Shown here: piece after piece, positions 273 to 38,653 of the stretch
Layout of the letters: each line of letters begins with the position of its first letter
Numbering within the stretch: position 1 is the stretch's first letter
From: Macrostomum lignano
Lineage: Eukaryota
Assembly (NCBI GenBank): GCA_002269645.1
Contig: NIVC01000103.1
Coordinates: forward strand, 865,393 to 929,392
Length of the DNA: 64,000 nucleotides
Direction: 5' to 3'
Notes under the pieces: model-generated
The model's input: only the letters and a program-made list of their open reading frames with translations
The model's database searches: none
What the model was told of the DNA's origin: nothing
Made by a program: the position numbers and the translations under genes

Positions 273-3200
273 CAGTCAAAAACAGATGCATAGGGTCATT
301 GTCCTGCTGAGAATAGAACAGTATAACATCCCTATGATCCGTGATGCTATTCCGAGTGTCCGTGATCACCAAATCGCATTTGTTTCGCTCGTTAAGATTC
401 GTCAAGTAGTTGGAAGCGTCGGGTTTTGAAATCACCAACAGATGCTGCAGAAAAAAGTTCAGAATACGAGAACGCTTCGAAAATTTCCACCTGATGTATG
501 TGATAAAATTAGCAAAATATTTTTACCTTCTTGGCCACTTTAACAGTGCATGGGCAGCTGCCATGAGGTCCAGCCTGAAGTTCAGCTTTAAAAGACGAAA
601 TATCTGCATCTGAAAATTATAGTCTGGTTTGATGTACTAGACAGTCTATAGTTCTTGAGGGCAAGCATTTAAACTCAAGAGGAGGCATTGGGTGGCGTGA
701 CAGGTTTGTCACAGGCGTCAGAAAAGGTTGTCAGGAGACTGGGGTGTCAGGAGAGACTGAGTTGTCAGGAGAGACTGGGTTGTCAAGAGAGACTGGGTTG
801 TCAGGAGAGACTGGAGTGTCAGGAGAGACTGGGTTGTCAAGAGAGACTGGGTTGTCAAGAGAGACTGGGTTGTCAAGAGAGACTGGGTTGTCAGGAGAGA
901 CTGGGGTGTCAGGAGGGACTGGGGTGTCAGTGTCAGGAGGGAATGGGTTGTAAAGAGAGACTGGGGTGTCAGGAGAGACTGGGTTGTCAAGAGAGACTGG
1001 GTTGTCAAGAGAGACTGGAGTGTCAGGAGAGACTGGGTTGTCAGGAGAGACTGGGGTGTCAGGAGGGACTGGGGTGTCAGTGTCAGGAGGGAATGGGTTG
1101 TAAAGAGAGACTGGGGTGTCAGGAGAGACTGGGTTGTCAAGAGAGACTGGGTTGTCAAGAGAGACTGGAGTGTCAGGAGAGACTGGGTTGTCAAGAGAGA
1201 CTGGGTTGTCAAGAGAGACTGGAGTGTCAGGAGAGACTGGGTTGTCAGGAGAGACTGGGGTGTCAGGAGGGACTGGGGTGTCAGTGTCAGGAGGGAATGG
1301 GTTGTCAAGAGAGACTGGGGTGTCAGGAGGGACTGGGGTGTCAGGAGGGACTGGGCTGTCAAGAGAGACTGGGGTGTCAGGAGAGACTGGGGTGTTAGAA
1401 GAGACAGTGAGGTGCCGAGAGAGACAGTGAGGTGTCAGGAGGATGTCAGGTGCTACAATAGGGTGTCAGGAAGATGTCAGGTGCTACAATAGGGTGTCAT
1501 GAGGATGTCAGGTGCTACAATAGGGTGTCAGGAGGATGTCAGATGCTACAATAGGGTGTCAGGAGGATATCAGATGCTACAATAGGGTGTCAGGAGGATA
1601 TCAGATGCTACAATAGGGTGTCAGGAGGATATCAGATGCTACAATAGGGTGTCAGGAGGATGTCAGATGCTACAATAGGGTGTCAGGAGGATATCGGATG
1701 CTACAATAGGGTGTCAAAGAAGCACGACAGGATCTTACGCGGCAGCGGATCGTCAAAGTACACCCAAATATCGTGGCAGCCACTGACTGTGGCTTGGTTT
1801 GGATGAATATCAAAAATGCCAAGTTTAACTTGCTGTCCTAAAATGTTTGTTGAAAATAAAAACAAAAACGATGCATGCAATTCATAAAGCACTAATTGTT
1901 TTACAATCTCAGAACAGAAACGATATTAAGAACTCACTAGAATCGGTGATGACATCAGAGGTCACAATGGCATTGGTAGGCTGGTGCTGGTCATTATAAT
2001 CAGTATAAAACACCTGGAAGACCAATCGTATTGACTTCAAATTCCGAGAATTGTACCTGGCTTCATCCATGTTTTCTGTGGGAAAAAGTTGACTGAATCA
2101 GGTTAAATCAAAGCGACAAGCATGACTCAGAAGCAGGCACACGCTCACACAGGGTGTACAGCGTTTTTTTAATTGATATTTATGAGAAGCCCAAACAGGA
2201 GCAACACAAATGAGAAGAGCCGCAACTCACTGTTGAACGGATTGAAGTTGATCTTCTTCCGGTTGTCGATGGCCTCCTGCAGCTTGGCGCCTTTGGTTGA
2301 TACGCAGACCAGCGACACTTTCTCTAGGCTGGGGAGATGGCAGCGAATGGGATTAGCGACTGGGGATCTGGGAGGCTGGTCCAGCAACTAAGGATCTGGG
2401 AGGCTGGCCCAGCAACTGAGGATCTGGGAGGCTGGCCCAGCAACTGAGGATCTGGGAGGCTGGCTCAGCAACTGAGGATCTGGGAGGCTGGCCCAGCAAC
2501 TGAGGATCTGGGAGGCTGTCCCAGCAACTGAGGATCTGGGAGGCTGGTCCAGCAACTGAGGATCTGGGAGGCTGGCCCAGCAACTGAGGATCTGGGAGGC
2601 TGGCCCAGCAACTAAGGATCTGGGAGGCTGGTCCAGCAACTGAGGATCTGGGAGGCTGGTCCAGCAACTGAGGATCTGGGAGGCTGGCCCAGCAACTGAG
2701 GATCTGGGAGGCTGGTCCAGCAACTGAGGATCTGGGAGGCTGGCCCAGCAACTGAGGATCTGGGAGGCTGGTCCAGCAACTGAGGATCTGGGAGGCTGGC
2801 CCAGCAACTAAGGATCTGGGAGGCTGGTCCAGCAACTGAGGATCTGGGAGGCTGGTCCAGCAACTGAGGATCTGGGAGGCTGGCCCAGCAACTGAGGATC
2901 TGGGAGGCTGGTCCAGCAACTGAGGATCTGGGAGGCTGGCCCAGCAACTGAGGATCTGGGAGGCTGGTCCAGCAACTGAGGATCTGGGAGGCTGGCCCAG
3001 CAACTAAGGATCTGGGAGGCTGGTCCAGCAACTGAGGATCTGGGAGGCTGGCCCAGCAACTGAGGATCTGGGAGGCTGGTCCAGCAACTGAGGATCTGGG
3101 AGGCTGGCCCAGCAACTGAGGATCTGGGAGGCTGGCCCAGCAACTGAGGATCTGGGAGGCTGGTCCAGCAACTGAGGATCTGGGAGGCTGGCTCAGCAAC

Positions 3201-35800: not shown

Positions 35801-38653
35801 GTAGAGAAATCGAAGGACTATGTACATTGGTGAGGGTTAGAGAAATCAAAGGACTATGTACACTGGTGGGGGTTGGAGAAATCGAAGGACTATGTACATT
35901 GGTGAGGGTTAGAGAAATCGAAGGACTATGTAGATTGGTGGGGGTAGAGAAATTGAAGGGCTATGTACATTGGTGGGGGTAGAGAAATTGAAGGGCTATG
36001 TACATTGGCGGAGTTAGAGAAATCGAAGGGCTATGTACATTGGCGGAGTTAGAGAAATCGAAGGGCTATTTACATTGGCGGGGTAGAGAAATCGAAGGGC
36101 TATGTACATTGGAAAGGGTAGAAAAATCGACTATGTACAAAACAATGACGTGGAAAATCGTTGTACTGTGTGAAAATTAGGGTGGAGAGAAATTCAGCAA
36201 TTTTAACTAAGTAAAAATGTCAAAAAAATTCTAAACAGAGCATCACAAGTTGCATGGTACTTACGAGGCAGCGCGTCCTTAAAGTACAACCACATCTCTT
36301 GCTGTTTAGCGTGCACGTAGCCTTCGCTAGGATGAGCCTCTTCAATTTCAAGTTTGGTCTGAAACTCTGGATAAATCAATGTTAGTGCAACAAGGTGAAT
36401 GTACAGATTCCGAACTAGATTAAATATGTAGATTAGCGCTTTGATCGACTTAAAAAACTATATGAAGTGTAGGACTTCGTGGCGTAGAAGTAAGGGTAAC
36501 TATGCACCTATTCACATTCGATGGAGGGTAGAGAAATTGGCGGGCTATGTACATGTACGTTAGGGGGGTAGAGAAATAGATGGGCTATGTACGTTAGAGA
36601 GATGGGGTAGAGAAATTTGCGGGCTATGTACGTCAGGGGGTGGTGAAAAGAAATTGGCTGGTTATGTACGTTAGGGGGGTAGAGAAATTGGCTGGCTGTG
36701 TACGTTAGGAGGGGGTAGAGAAATGGCGGGTAGGATATGTACATTTGAATGCGGTAGAAAAACCGGATGGTGACGTTATTATAAGATAAAATATAATACA
36801 CTAAAGTACGTAGCCTAAGGAATTCATAAGCGATAAAAACAACTGTTATTTTCACGCAAGGTTCAACTTACTGATGTCAGAAATCACTTCAGTCTGCGCA
36901 ATGGCGCCCTTGCATGGCACAGTTTTGCCATTCAAATCGATGTAGTATGCTTGAAATACCAGGCGTAATTCGCGAACGTTTCTTGATGTGTACTTCATTT
37001 CCGATATTTTCTCTGGGAATGAGAATGCCAAATGAAATAAAACTCAAGTCATACAAGCGTAAAAATACTGACATAATGCATGATTAATGCTCAGTTGCTG
37101 GGCCTCCCAGATCCTCAGTTGCTGGGCCAGCCTCCCAGAGACCCAGTTGCTGGGCCAGCCTCCCAGATCCTCAGTTGCTGGGCCAGCCTCTCAGATCCTC
37201 AGTGGCTGGGCCAGACTCCCAGATCCTTAGTTGCTGAGCCAGCCTATCAGATCCTCAGTTGCTAGGCCAGCCTCCCAGATCCTCAGTTGCTGGGCCAGCC
37301 TCCCAGATCCTCAGTTGCTGGGCCAGCCTCCCAGATCCTCAGTTGCTGGGCTGCTCTCCCCACACAAGCACACAGAAAACAGGTCATTTAAACTCACTAT
37401 TAAACGGATTAAACTGAATCTCTTCGCGTCGCTTGATTGCCTTCTGCAGCTTTCCGCTGCTGCCTCCGTGCGGCACACAGACCAGGGACACCTTCTCTAG
37501 GCTGCAATTCGTTATTCAAACAGATGAGTAATGATCATTTTTAATGTTATTCGTAAAAACAATGGAAAAAGATGTCTAAATGTAACGCTACGATAACGAA
37601 ATAAAATGAACAAAAGTCAGAAAGAGCACTTAGGTAGCGGTGAAAAATGATAAGAGGGATGAGAAGGTGAGAAACATGCCGAGTCTGACATGGAATGCTT
37701 GAGAGTGAGACATGGAATGCAGAGAGTCAGACATGGAATGCAGATAGTCAGACATGGAATGCAGAGAGTCAAACGCAGAATTTGGGGACTCAGACACTGA
37801 AAGATGCTGAGACCTGAGAGTCAGACACTGAATGAGGGGACTCAGACACTGAAGGATGCTGAGACCTGAGAGTCAGACACTGAATGAGGGGACTCAGACA
37901 CTGAAGGATGCTGAGACCTGAGAGTCAGACACTGAATGAGGGGACTCAGACACTGAAGGATGCTGAGACCTGAGAGTCAGACACTGAAGGATGCTGAGAC
38001 CTGAGAGTCAGACACTGAAGGATGCTGAGACCTGAGAGTCAGACACTGAATGAGGGGACTCAGACACTGAAGGATGCTGAGACCTGAGACTCAGACACTG
38101 AAGGATGCTGAGACCTGAGAGCCAGACACTGAATGAGGGGACTCAGACACTGAAGGATGCTGAGACCTGAGACTCAGACACTGAAGGATGCTGAGACCTG
38201 AGAGTCAGACACTGAAGGATGCTGAGACCTGAGACTCAGACACTGAAGGATGCTGAGACCTGAGAGTCAGACACTGAAGGATGCTGAGACCTGAGAGTCA
38301 GACACAACCTCATCATTAAAATAACCAGAAGGCGCCACTAACCAGATCTCAATCTCTTTGCCAACATCGGCAGCCGTGATGTCTCGGCGCCACTGGAACG
38401 CGCCGCTCTCGCAGGAGTCGCCGTGCATGTAGAACGGATGCGGATAGCCGTCTGGGCTGATGGTGCCGCCAATGACGATGACGGTGCGACACACTGCGGG
38501 ATCCGCACCCCTAAGGGTGAGTCGGACGCAGCTCTTGCTGCCGGACCGGCCGTACAAGAGGCCGCCCAGTTTGCCGCCAGCAATTTCAGTCTCATAACGG
38601 AATCGGTGATAGCGGGCAGGCTGCTCAAGTATGCTCAGACTTAGGGAGACCAT
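32845..38653 (-). CDS. Rel-homology-region transcription factor paralog RHR5 (~342 aa)
   Basis: ATG in caccATGG at 38653. Exons 38653-38343 ([17 protein letters not shown]), 37501-37398 (KAIKRREEIQFNPF; cf. Dorsal AALKAREEIRVDPF), 37012-36872 (LRLVFQAY), 36366-36265 (EMWLYFKD), 35671-35589, 33215-33044, 32960-32845 (PAHKRSR, TAA). 1029 nt open frame. Confidence 0.82.
33229..35085. repeat. (GATA)n/(GACA)n compound microsatellite (RHR5 intron 5)
   Basis: ~1.85 kb of alternating GATA/GACA runs. Confidence 0.98.
37680..38305. repeat. 31-bp minisatellite with 21-bp interrupts (RHR5 intron 1)
   Basis: CAGACACTGAAGGATGCTGAGACCTGAGAGT units. Confidence 0.93.

Follow-up and report, generated by a model that had tools for sequence, protein, structure and literature searches.

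Compact, divergent Rel/Dorsal-like genes form a tandem cluster in the flatworm Macrostomum lignano

The presence of a Rel-like gene family in a phylum usually described as being without clear NF-kB homologues raises the question of what such genes are, and how they stand relative to the Rel, NF-kB and NFAT proteins of other animals. The locus considered here lies in the window, by which we mean the whole 64,000-nucleotide stretch of Macrostomum lignano DNA that was analysed (contig NIVC01000103.1, positions 865,393 to 929,392). The original prediction, made from the letters of the sequence, had described five same-strand genes of one seven-exon architecture, and had read them as a rapidly diverging, lineage-specific Rel-like expansion of particular interest should the host be a flatworm, which it is. 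Our analysis suggests that the window probably contains part of a tandem cluster, namely five compact genes for Rel-homology transcription factors of the Rel/Dorsal type, and we propose that their products are dimerising kappaB-type binders.

Five intact Rel-like genes are arranged in tandem on the minus strand, running from 38653 (the ATG of gene 5) to 273 (the last base of gene 1 exon 6), exactly the span that had been predicted. Five copies of the RFRYE motif are present in the window, all on the minus strand (3965-3979, 18285-18299, 24371-24385, 31361-31375 and 38591-38605), and each copy is trailed by the other predicted motifs in unchanged order. Exon junctions were placed by a frame-aware splice-site search, which recovered homologous positions in all five copies; exon 6 of gene 5 was placed via P0011 (6 differences in 342 aa). 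As foreseen, the genes have seven exons apiece, phases 2,1,1,1,0,1, assembled coding sequences free of internal stops, and GT-AG consensus at every intron (29/29), except that only six exons of gene 1 fall inside the window, because exon 7 (EAPQKRKRATPSQKPVVNMDEFLQIV, then a stop) sits in the left flank, approximately 310-390 bp left of the window. The protein lengths of 334, 344, 340, 387 and 342 aa for genes 1 to 5 agree with the expected range of about 340-390 aa. The gene models are as follows:

4051-3717, 2328-2231, 2075-1938, 1837-1739, 609-527, 444-273, minus strand: gene 1, 334 aa including the off-window exon 7, RHD_DNA_bind 65 bits
18371-18037, 13281-13184, 13028-12891 (exons 1-3) and 8510-8412, 8339-8257, 7739-7547, 7463-7375 (exons 4'-7'), minus strand: gene 2, 344 aa, Pfam 65 bits
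24445-24120, 23513-23422, 22853-22710, 21637-21539, 21459-21380, 20907-20715, 20634-20546, minus strand: gene 3, 340 aa
31423-31116, 29981-29881, 29795-29652, 28099-28001, 27578-27475, 26878-26680, 26222-26014, minus strand: gene 4, 387 aa
38653-38343, 37501-37398, 37012-36872, 36366-36265, 35671-35589, 33215-33044, 32960-32845, minus strand: gene 5, 342 aa

Gene 1 has a second ATG at 4018 (MKIELLEQP), an alternative start that is the one used by database homologues, and gene 4 ends in a Gln/Pro-rich C-terminal tail. Genes 3 and 4 are identical in every letter to P0012 (BOX15_Mlig000125g2) and P0001 (BOX15_Mlig000125g1), respectively, which are GenBank models from a genome-guided RNA-seq transcriptome (PMC5730564); transcript support in the window thus extends to these two genes. 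In addition, a 1,124-bp contig of run SRR30276804 carries the close homologue P0006 as a single unbroken ORF of 327 codons. The window genes are already in UniProt as unnamed 'RHD domain-containing protein', and their tandem cluster numbers at least seven genes on the contig. The introns of the cluster genes are crowded with minisatellites and one LINE, and intron 5 of gene 5 carries a (TAGA)n array of approximately 461 units (33243-35086).

Exons 1-3 encode the Rel-homology DNA-binding domain, exons 4-6 a second immunoglobulin-like domain, and exon 7 a putative NLS and a short tail. Pfam RHD_DNA_bind (PF00554; gathering cutoff 27 bits) matched all five proteins at 45.3-65.2 bits, from model position 1 to 155-169 of 169. 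The recognition loop reads RFRYE[TSK]E, and the equivalents of p65 Arg33, Arg35, Tyr36 and Glu39, which we take to be the base-contacting residues of the published p65/p50-DNA structures, are invariant in genes 1-5. Other positions vary, with T/T/S/K/T at the equivalent of p65 Cys38, R/S/S/K/K at that of Arg187, and only partial retention of the Lys122/Lys123 and Lys218/Lys221 backbone contacts (gene 5 is without the Lys122 equivalent). The basic motif at the start of exon 7 (KRKR in genes 1-3, KRLR in gene 4, KRSR in gene 5) presumably works as an NLS, and K328, R329 and R331 within it do not vary across the family alignment. The predicted absence of ankyrin tails was borne out, as Ank-family profiles found none in the five proteins at E values up to 10; a death domain or IkB-like tail is likewise absent, no long activation domain is evident, and in the predicted models the proteins end 25-90 residues past domain 2 in a disordered tail.

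The claim of a full Rel homology region stands for the DNA-binding domain, the NLS and the fold, but not for the dimerisation profile: with E values up to 10 allowed, Pfam RHD_dimer (PF16179) matched none of the five proteins (the canonical control P0028 scored 121 bits), and profile homology to Rel, in both the PDB search and hhalign, does not reach beyond the opening strands of domain 2. The second domain is therefore recognised mainly by its fold, and the case for dimerisation is built on the predicted structures. AlphaFold2 models of gene 4 (m517517942a87) and gene 3 (m9eb61aeee8ba) fold into a pair of beta-sandwich domains, and most blocks of domain 2 have pLDDT 81-95. Foldseek matched both RelA domains with these models (E 9e-18 and 3e-17), aligning 300-315 columns to 273-276-residue two-domain RelA chains at TM up to 0.74; for gene 3, 300 columns of the model superimposed on DNA-bound RelA with an rmsd of 4.3 A and TM 0.74. 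The structural comparison with p50, RelA and NFAT suggested at the outset favoured RelA, c-Rel and p50, whose two-domain Rel homology region was matched, over NFAT, which ranked lower. According to these models, the domain of exons 4-6 superimposes onto the Rel dimerisation domain, and its core interface has His, Trp and Tyr throughout, where p65 has Asn200, Phe213 and Leu215.

The family extends well beyond this locus, to at least 52 loci and about 20 distinct paralogs in the redundant M. lignano assembly. It is monophyletic (tree support 0.995), was found in Macrostomum only, and consists of paralogs 36-54% identical to each other, in keeping with the lineage-specific expansion and rapid divergence that had been predicted. 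Besides the four loop residues, 49 alignment columns are invariant among paralogs, and synonymous sites are saturated; P0024-type members score 24 bits, under the Pfam cutoff, and carry the loop RFRFVTEK. The nearest named proteins outside Macrostomum are insect Dorsal, other named matches being c-Rel and p65 homologues, and none of the named nearest matches is a planarian sequence. Against the PDB, the family profile matched p65, c-Rel, RelB and Gambif1 at E ~1e-12 and p50 at ~1e-4, and in hhalign it matched 20 canonical Rel/Dorsal proteins with 99.5% probability (E 3e-23, columns 6-212). A FastTree phylogeny with the NFAT5-like genes of M. lignano as root, built from a set without class I sequences, placed the family outside a 119-protein Rel/Dorsal-like clade with support 0.80, a position that may reflect long-branch attraction to the root. 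All 119 of those proteins are of Rel/Dorsal type, nearly all with RFRY[EK]CEG, and those that bear a name are called Dorsal, c-Rel or p65. The best matches and the tree both put the family next to the Rel/Dorsal class, on a long branch, and not with canonical NF-kB. Canonical RHD_dimer domains were found in the M. lignano genome in NFAT5-like genes only, which form three gene groups. The genome search proposed for further paralogs and IkB/IKK was productive for the former; the IKK scaffold domain was not found, and classical IkB/IKK control is therefore unsupported.

One of the five genes has an unusual history. Self-similarity blocks reveal gene 2 to be chimeric, its exons 1-3 being gene-1-like and its exons 4-7 gene-3-like, in association with these features:

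12817-12719, minus strand: original exon 4 of gene 2, now redundant, acceptor TAG changed to TTG (TTTTAG in gene 1, TTTTTG here)
726-4412: duplicated block holding gene 1 exons 1-4 and minisatellites, pairing with 11699-18731 (the LINE-bearing copy), 87-95% identity by self-BLASTN
5627-9001: duplicated block holding exons 4'-7' used by gene 2, pairing with 18729-22525 (gene 3 exons 4-7), 87% identity over 3.3 kb by self-BLASTN
14167-17836, plus strand: non-LTR (LINE-type) retrotransposon, antisense in gene 2 intron 1, with a reverse-transcriptase ORF (RVT_1, 98 bits)

An open frame with GT-AG introns is obtained for gene 2 only by leaving out its own exon 4 and splicing exon 3 to exon 4' at 8510; use of a neighbouring CAG at 12812 as acceptor would put the reading out of frame. 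All five predicted genes can therefore be read open, but gene 2 is no independent unit. The duplication alignment is interrupted at 14167 and 17836, the borders of the LINE, which has no match in gene 1 or in the compared pieces of the homeologous contigs C85 and C278. The 14-kb duplication is specific to this contig, the gene 2 block being missing from C85 and C278.

The 14-kb duplication could be an assembly artefact, and it is conceivable, if on balance doubtful, that the window represents four genes rather than five, with two haplotypes or homeologs falsely joined in tandem via a shared 18-bp minisatellite. C85 and C278 each have a single gene-1-type copy between gene 3 and a sixth gene; the block of gene 1 exons 2-4 is 99.5% identical to C85 and 91% to C278, the equivalent gene 2 block is 97.7% identical to C278 and 92% to C85, and the exon 4'-7' block and the 3' end of the C85 copy of gene 3 share 97% identity. 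Both duplicate copies are also bordered by one minisatellite family, and DV1, the line that was sequenced, carries additional large chromosomes and yielded a redundant assembly (PMC5730564). However, unequal crossing-over between homologues would yield the same identity pattern, and neither copy matches another contig exactly, so there must be another distinct sequence. This contig alone has the LINE and the 1.2-kb junction segment (4412-5627), and acceptor loss in the redundant exon 4 is what would be expected of a real, expressed fusion gene. A broader doubt is that duplicates in decay, or neofunctionalised ones, make up many of the copies, whether as pseudogenes in waiting or as non-DNA-binding or dominant-negative decoys instead of working transcription factors, and that locus number merely reflects a duplication-prone, repeat-rich polyploid genome. 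Redundancy in the assembly is indeed high, blocks of 95% identity or more making up 180 Mb (PMC5730564), and repeat-stuffed introns, the exon skipping and frame-breaking alternative acceptor of gene 2, low paralog identity, variable DNA-backbone contacts and the sub-cutoff P0024-type members would all fit. We nevertheless regard this as unlikely, given that the window genes have intact frames and consensus introns, genes 3 and 4 equal transcript-derived models, and the four loop residues and 49 further columns are invariant despite synonymous saturation. Moreover, omega is below 1 in recent pairs: 0.14 for genes 1 and 2 over exons 1-3 (dS 0.067, dN 0.009) and 0.42 for genes 2 and 3 over exons 4-7, values based on few substitutions (12 and 34).

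It is far less probable still that the family is NFAT-like rather than Rel-like, binding DNA as monomers with partner factors in the manner of NFAT1-4. The NFAT loop contains Glu-Thr-Glu, which the window loop RFRYETE shares, with Thr replacing the Rel Cys; this could be taken as a sign of NFAT ancestry, as could the alteration of all Rel dimer-interface residues and the undetected RHD_dimer domain. Yet the NFAT-type loop R-A-[HR]-Y-x-T-E-G-S-R-G is not matched, as the window loop is without GSRG, and the PDB sequence search returned no NFAT chains with E values up to 1. In the fold ranking, TonEBP and NFAT1 come below every Rel/NF-kB chain (E 1e-12 to 1e-9, compared with 1e-17), the genome's own NFAT5-like genes, with the loop HHRARY[LM]TEGSRG, reach no more than 8.6 bits with the family profile, and the outgroup matches in the tree are without exception of Rel/Dorsal type.

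Under the preferred reading of Rel/Dorsal-type factors, the proteins would enter the nucleus through the exon-7 signal, bind kappaB-like DNA half-sites with the conserved loop, and form homo- or heterodimers through the second domain, with the family-specific His/Trp/Tyr interface favouring pairing within the family. Expansion would have occurred by local tandem duplication. Gene 2 may illustrate one route of growth: exons 1-3 of the gene-1 type would have been brought together with exons 4-7 of the gene-3 type by a duplication whose two breakpoints both lay in introns, after which the redundant exon 4 would have lost its acceptor. It is tempting to speculate that such combinatorial dimers serve immunity or regeneration.

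How, then, does the family compare with known Rel-homology systems? Its best sequence and fold matches are the Class II Rel proteins (RelA/p65, c-Rel and RelB; Dorsal and Dif), with which it shares the two-domain Rel homology region, the Arg-x-Arg-Tyr...Glu loop, an NLS just past domain 2, and the lack of ankyrin repeats. A compact Class II protein is found in Tribolium Dorsal 2 (378-384 aa), but in general the Macrostomum proteins are far shorter than Class II Rel and without the long activation domain, have Thr, Ser or Lys instead of Cys38, possess a second domain beyond the reach of the RHD_dimer HMM, and in the FastTree phylogeny fall on a long branch outside the canonical Rel/Dorsal clade. 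Most animals carry one to five Rel genes, whereas M. lignano has about 20 distinct paralogs. The Rel homology fold is common to Class I NF-kB (p105/p50, p100/p52 and Relish), but those proteins have C-terminal ankyrin repeats and a death domain, neither of which the window proteins possess, and sequence similarity to them is much weaker (p50 at E ~1e-4, compared with 1e-12 for p65). A published census lists Platyhelminthes among the groups without p50/p105 (PMC11432056). NFAT5/TonEBP resembles the family in its fold and in having Thr instead of Cys in the recognition loop, but the NFAT5-type genes of M. lignano are separate from it.

The original prediction held that these genes would bear on the supposed loss of NF-kB in flatworms. 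They do add a Rel/Dorsal-like family to the phylum, but that loss had already been qualified in print, because seven divergent RHD genes and a conserved NFAT5 were reported from Schmidtea mediterranea (Development 2026, PMC13563047). The planarian genes, like the Macrostomum family, have long branches and low similarity to immune NF-kB, and one of them is lethal on RNAi (PMC13563047). Divergent flatworm RHD genes are thus already known from planarians, and the Macrostomum family is a further case. Going by the published description of Schmidtea, the two flatworms are alike in having divergent RHD genes beside conserved NFAT5-type genes, with seven RHD genes in Schmidtea and at least 52 loci in Macrostomum.

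The peptide RFRYE occurs five times in the window, on the minus strand every time, and 3' of each copy the motifs GG.LY.R, HP..M.GD.C, VSLVCV, FNPF, RL.FQ, W.YF and KRKR follow in an order that is constant across all five. The window sequence is eukaryotic, with fragmentary ORFs and abundant mini- and microsatellites and retroelements. To build exon models, frame-compatible GT/AG pairs were listed between consecutive open frames and retained if the junction was homologous in all copies. Five genes (numbered 1-5 from left to right) resulted, each with seven exons, phases 2,1,1,1,0,1, GT...AG at all introns and no internal stops, and with products of 334, 344, 340, 387 and 342 aa. 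Once spliced, genes 4 and 3 reproduce exactly the M. lignano proteins P0001 (BOX15_Mlig000125g1) and P0012 (BOX15_Mlig000125g2), respectively, and gene 5 differs from its near-copy P0011 at 6 of 342 residues. Splice-site enumeration, open frames and these database identities therefore confirm the original prediction of five seven-exon Rel-like genes with shared phases. The limits that it set for the array are also real gene features, 38653 being the ATG of gene 5 and 273 the donor of gene 1 exon 6. The features of the window are as follows.

Features of the window
273-38653, minus strand: five compact Rel-like genes
735-1441 and 9007-12044: 18-mer minisatellite, intronic
2355-3662 and 13308-14167: 28-mer minisatellite, intron 1 of genes 1 and 2
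14167-17836, plus strand: LINE-type element (RVT_1, 98 bits), antisense in gene 2 intron 1
21732-22376, 28233-29590, 30033-30974 and 37894-38278: further intronic minisatellites
33243-35086: (TAGA)n array of about 461 units, intronic
41525-42856, minus strand: 443-aa open frame with poly-Gln, poly-Ala and His runs, no Pfam match
44300-56630, minus strand: multi-exon SH3-SH2-tyrosine-kinase gene (Pfam SH3, SH2, PK_Tyr_Ser-Thr)
51381-55478, minus strand: single uninterrupted gag-pol-type frame of 1,365 aa, with zinc knuckle, protease, RT, RNase H and integrase motifs identified by eye

Several alternative gene boundaries were rejected. Termination of gene 1 at a stop near 270 is ruled out by its exon 7 (EAPQKRKRATPSQKPVVNMDEFLQIV*), located about 0.3 kb past the left edge of the window, and an exon 6 of gene 5 at 35.1-35.3 kb by P0011, which puts this exon at 33215-33044, on the far side of the (TAGA)n array. 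The similarity between ~27710-27841 and ~35086-35253 was considered as exon homology and judged more likely to be a dispersed intronic repeat.

All five proteins match Pfam RHD_DNA_bind over the whole model at 45-65 bits (cutoff 27), and none of the five matches RHD_dimer or ankyrin in the Pfam search. The expected Pfam matches were thus borne out for the DNA-binding domain but not for the dimerisation domain, and the proposed lack of ankyrin tails agrees with this search. Against PDB sequences, a family profile finds p65, c-Rel, RelB and Gambif1 (a Dorsal homologue) at E ~1e-12 and p50/p105 more weakly, at E ~1e-4, with no NFAT match among these sequences. A profile of 20 canonical Rel/Dorsal proteins aligns to that of the family with a probability of 99.5% over family columns 6-212, which span all of domain 1 and the initial strands of domain 2. 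AlphaFold2 models of genes 4 and 3 contain two confident beta-sandwich domains followed by a disordered tail, and Foldseek aligns 300-315 columns of them to RelA chains holding both domains (E 9e-18 and 3e-17). The Rel homology fold anticipated for these proteins is therefore recovered in the models, including the second domain that the RHD_dimer HMM does not detect.

Placing p65 residues on the window proteins through the family HMM shows no variation at Arg33, Arg35, Tyr36 and Glu39 (p65 numbering). In genes 1-5, T/T/S/K/T stand in place of Cys38, Lys122 corresponds to K/K/K/R/G and Arg187 to R/S/S/K/K, and the dimer-core residues Asn200, Phe213 and Leu215 are His, Trp and Tyr in all genes, the Trp and Tyr of gene 4 being W209 and Y211; the roles assigned to these p65 residues follow the published complexes. 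A basic KR[KLS]R stands at the start of exon 7 in all five genes. Sequence and predicted structure together show that these are compact Rel homology proteins of two domains, in which the base-reading loop is intact; they carry an NLS-like motif and lack an inhibitory ankyrin tail. Exon 7 would drive nuclear import, the proteins would bind kappaB-like half-sites, and the second domain may dimerise via a His/Trp/Tyr core peculiar to the family, which would favour pairing among its members and could yield many dimer combinations. We are highly confident of membership in the Rel family and consider the interpretation as a whole likely; that the proteins act as DNA-binding dimers is somewhat less secure, although we favour it.

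Genes 1-5 are not five independent units. In a self-comparison, 726-4412 recurs at 11699-18731, the second copy being split by the LINE at 14167-17836, and 5627-9001 recurs at 18729-22525. A segment running, on the gene strand, from gene 3 intron 3 to gene 1 intron 4 is duplicated in tandem, and gene 2 therefore has exons 1-4 of gene 1 type and, after them, exons 4'-7' of gene 3 type (8510-7375). The acceptor of gene 2's own exon 4 (12817-12719) is gone (TAG to TTG); skipping this exon leaves the frame intact and gives 344 aa, and use of a neighbouring CAG acceptor would cause a frameshift. The 1.2 kb at 4412-5627, exactly between the duplicated blocks, is matched neither in the paired copy nor in the compared stretches of C85 and C278, two contigs of the same assembly that carry homeologous or haplotype versions of the cluster.

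Nearly all long introns of the Rel-like genes are packed with minisatellite, a different one each, and the 28-mer of intron 1 in genes 1 and 2 recurs in inverted orientation at 37087-37351, in gene 5 intron 2. The LINE has long open frames at 14164-14838, 14568-16280 and 16133-17731; neither gene 1 nor the C85 and C278 stretches compared contain it, and its insertion is therefore recent. The 18-mer flanks both copies of the duplicated block and may therefore have mediated either duplication or mis-assembly. C85 and C278 carry one gene-1-type copy each, and over the block of exons 2-4 the gene 1 copy is 99.5% identical to C85 and the gene 2 copy 97.7% identical to C278. The two copies in the window's contig (C103) resemble different lineages, which fits unequal crossing-over and a haplotype mis-join alike, and the assembly is known to be redundant (PMC5730564). 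We rate an assembly artefact as possible but somewhat unlikely. Provided that the assembly is correct, gene 2 is a clean case of gene birth via intron-to-intron tandem duplication.

The Rel-like family is far diverged yet is not evolving neutrally. Synonymous sites are saturated between divergent paralogs (dN 0.4-0.7), omega is 0.14 between genes 1 and 2 over exons 1-3, where 8 changes are synonymous and 4 non-synonymous, and it is 0.42 between genes 2 and 3 over exons 4-7.

Further paralogs, which the original prediction had proposed to seek in the genome, are numerous. A search of the 764-Mb assembly with gene 4 returned 52 or more matches of exon-1 type, whose clusters are of three types, each present on about three contigs; given this roughly threefold redundancy, the matches probably represent about 20 distinct paralogs.

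Exon-1-type matches by contig
Cluster type 1: C103, 6; C85, 6; C278, 5
Cluster type 2: C109, 10; C475, 7; C1505, 6
Cluster type 3: C20, 5; C694, 3; C1367, 2
Singletons: 2

On C103, of which the window covers 865393-929392, the array extends to the left of the window, where a sixth RHD gene encodes P0015 (BOX15_Mlig028098g1, 357 aa) at ~857309-863369, 2.0-8.1 kb outside. The start of a seventh lies at ~855400-855560 (9.8 kb outside) and is of the highly divergent P0024 type, with the loop RFRFVTEK and a Pfam score of 24 bits, under the cutoff. Three fragments of 251-252 aa in P0015's 90%-identity cluster (P0160-P0162; UniProt A0A1I8JHQ7, A0A1I8HQK5 and A0A1I8IFN0) match the family profile at 169-176 bits; UniProt's name for them, 'Inositol-pentakisphosphate 2-kinase', looks like a misannotation that has been propagated.

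Searched exhaustively with the family profile, 1.84 billion representatives yielded 275 proteins at E <= 0.001. The strong compact matches are M. lignano without exception; next come insect Dorsal proteins (thrips, 105 bits; Tribolium Dorsal 2, 80 bits) and then a plateau of Rel/Dorsal/p65 homologues, nearly all with RFRY[EK]CEG and without an ankyrin motif. No other flatworm is among the 30 matches with names, and planarian orthologues may yet be present because most of the 275 carry none. In a FastTree phylogeny rooted on the NFAT5-like genes of M. lignano (SH-like supports only), the Macrostomum family forms a single clade (0.995) that falls outside the one formed by 119 Rel/Dorsal-like proteins (0.80). 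Its sister in the tree, poorly supported, is P0026, an unnamed 417-aa transcript with a weak RHD_dimer match.

Canonical RHD_dimer domains were found at eight places in the genome, in three gene groups, all with the NFAT5/TonEBP loop HHRARY[LM]TEGSRG.

NFAT5/TonEBP-like groups (RHD_dimer 38-78 bits; 2-3 contigs each)
C906, ~291-294 kb
C2080, ~145-153 kb
C158, ~341-342.5 kb

A canonical Rel gene elsewhere in the genome was considered and rejected, all eight RHD_dimer places (a lower bound from an exon-wise search) being NFAT5-like. TIR-domain genes are present. The IKK scaffold domain (PF18397) was not detected and NEMO-type CC2-LZ gave a sub-threshold match only, both weak negatives from the exon-wise genome search; a classical IkB/IKK switch is, on this weak evidence, not supported. 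Ankyrin repeats do not by themselves identify an IkB.

All of the nearest proteins belong to Macrostomum lignano, and the host is thus a flatworm, as the original prediction had supposed it might be. These proteins are labelled 'hypothetical protein BOX15_Mlig...' by NCBI and 'RHD domain-containing protein' by UniProt. The GenBank annotation was built from a genome-guided RNA-seq transcriptome (PMC5730564). That genes 3 and 4 match annotated proteins exactly is therefore indirect transcript support, and the RNA evidence for the window's own genes is that of this published annotation. A 49%-identical homologue, P0006, is encoded on a 1,124-bp contig of run SRR30276804 by an ORF that runs uninterrupted for 327 codons; this is a relative's spliced mRNA, colinear across all junctions. 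No paper describing the family was found in the literature searched (Macrostomum with NF-kB/Rel homology, and gene IDs).

Elsewhere in the window, the kinase gene carries SH3 and SH2 at 56628-55969 and kinase exons at ~50411-49884, 46656-46135 and 45709-45407; its SH2 and kinase sequences look Abl-like. The gag-pol frame lies within an intron of this gene, between similar minisatellites (50416-50976 and 55616-56050); it resembles a young LTR retrotransposon of the Ty3/gypsy type. The 443-aa frame may belong, as an exon, to a gene for a low-complexity nuclear protein, or be non-coding.

Flatworms are treated in reviews and censuses as lacking a clear NF-kB. Here, an early-branching free-living flatworm retains bona fide Rel-type proteins with the DNA-reading loop intact, expanded into several tandem arrays. 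It is tempting to speculate that the ~20 paralogs (from at least 52 loci) constitute a closed network of combinatorial dimers, isolated from NFAT5 by the His/Trp/Tyr interface, that replaces the missing canonical NF-kB/IkB/IKK module in the immunity, response to wounding or stem-cell regulation of flatworms, a proposal that we regard as unlikely. If true, it would be the largest radiation of Rel-homology transcription factors in animals known to us. The question raised is what a Rel family does in an animal with TIR-domain genes and NFAT5, yet in which the NF-kB dimerisation domain was found in NFAT5 only and the IKK scaffold was not found. M. lignano is RNAi-tractable. Transgenesis is also possible and the species serves as a regeneration model (PMC5730564), so the role of the family is directly testable.

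The Macrostomum family offers a real lead on NF-kB evolution and on the biology of flatworms. Its sequences are already public, although unnamed, and its architecture is that of ordinary Rel. A pan-animal census lists Platyhelminthes without p50/p105, Macrostomum not being among its taxa (PMC11432056), and a 2026 planarian study reports only seven long-branch RHD genes, lacking a clear immune role (PMC13563047). This Schmidtea mediterranea set, which stands beside a conserved NFAT5 (PMC13563047), is the closest biological precedent, and the class II Rel factors (RelA, c-Rel and Dorsal) are the closest known proteins. The Macrostomum family thus adds an unusually large, unstudied group to a type of transcription factor already known and is not a new kind of system.
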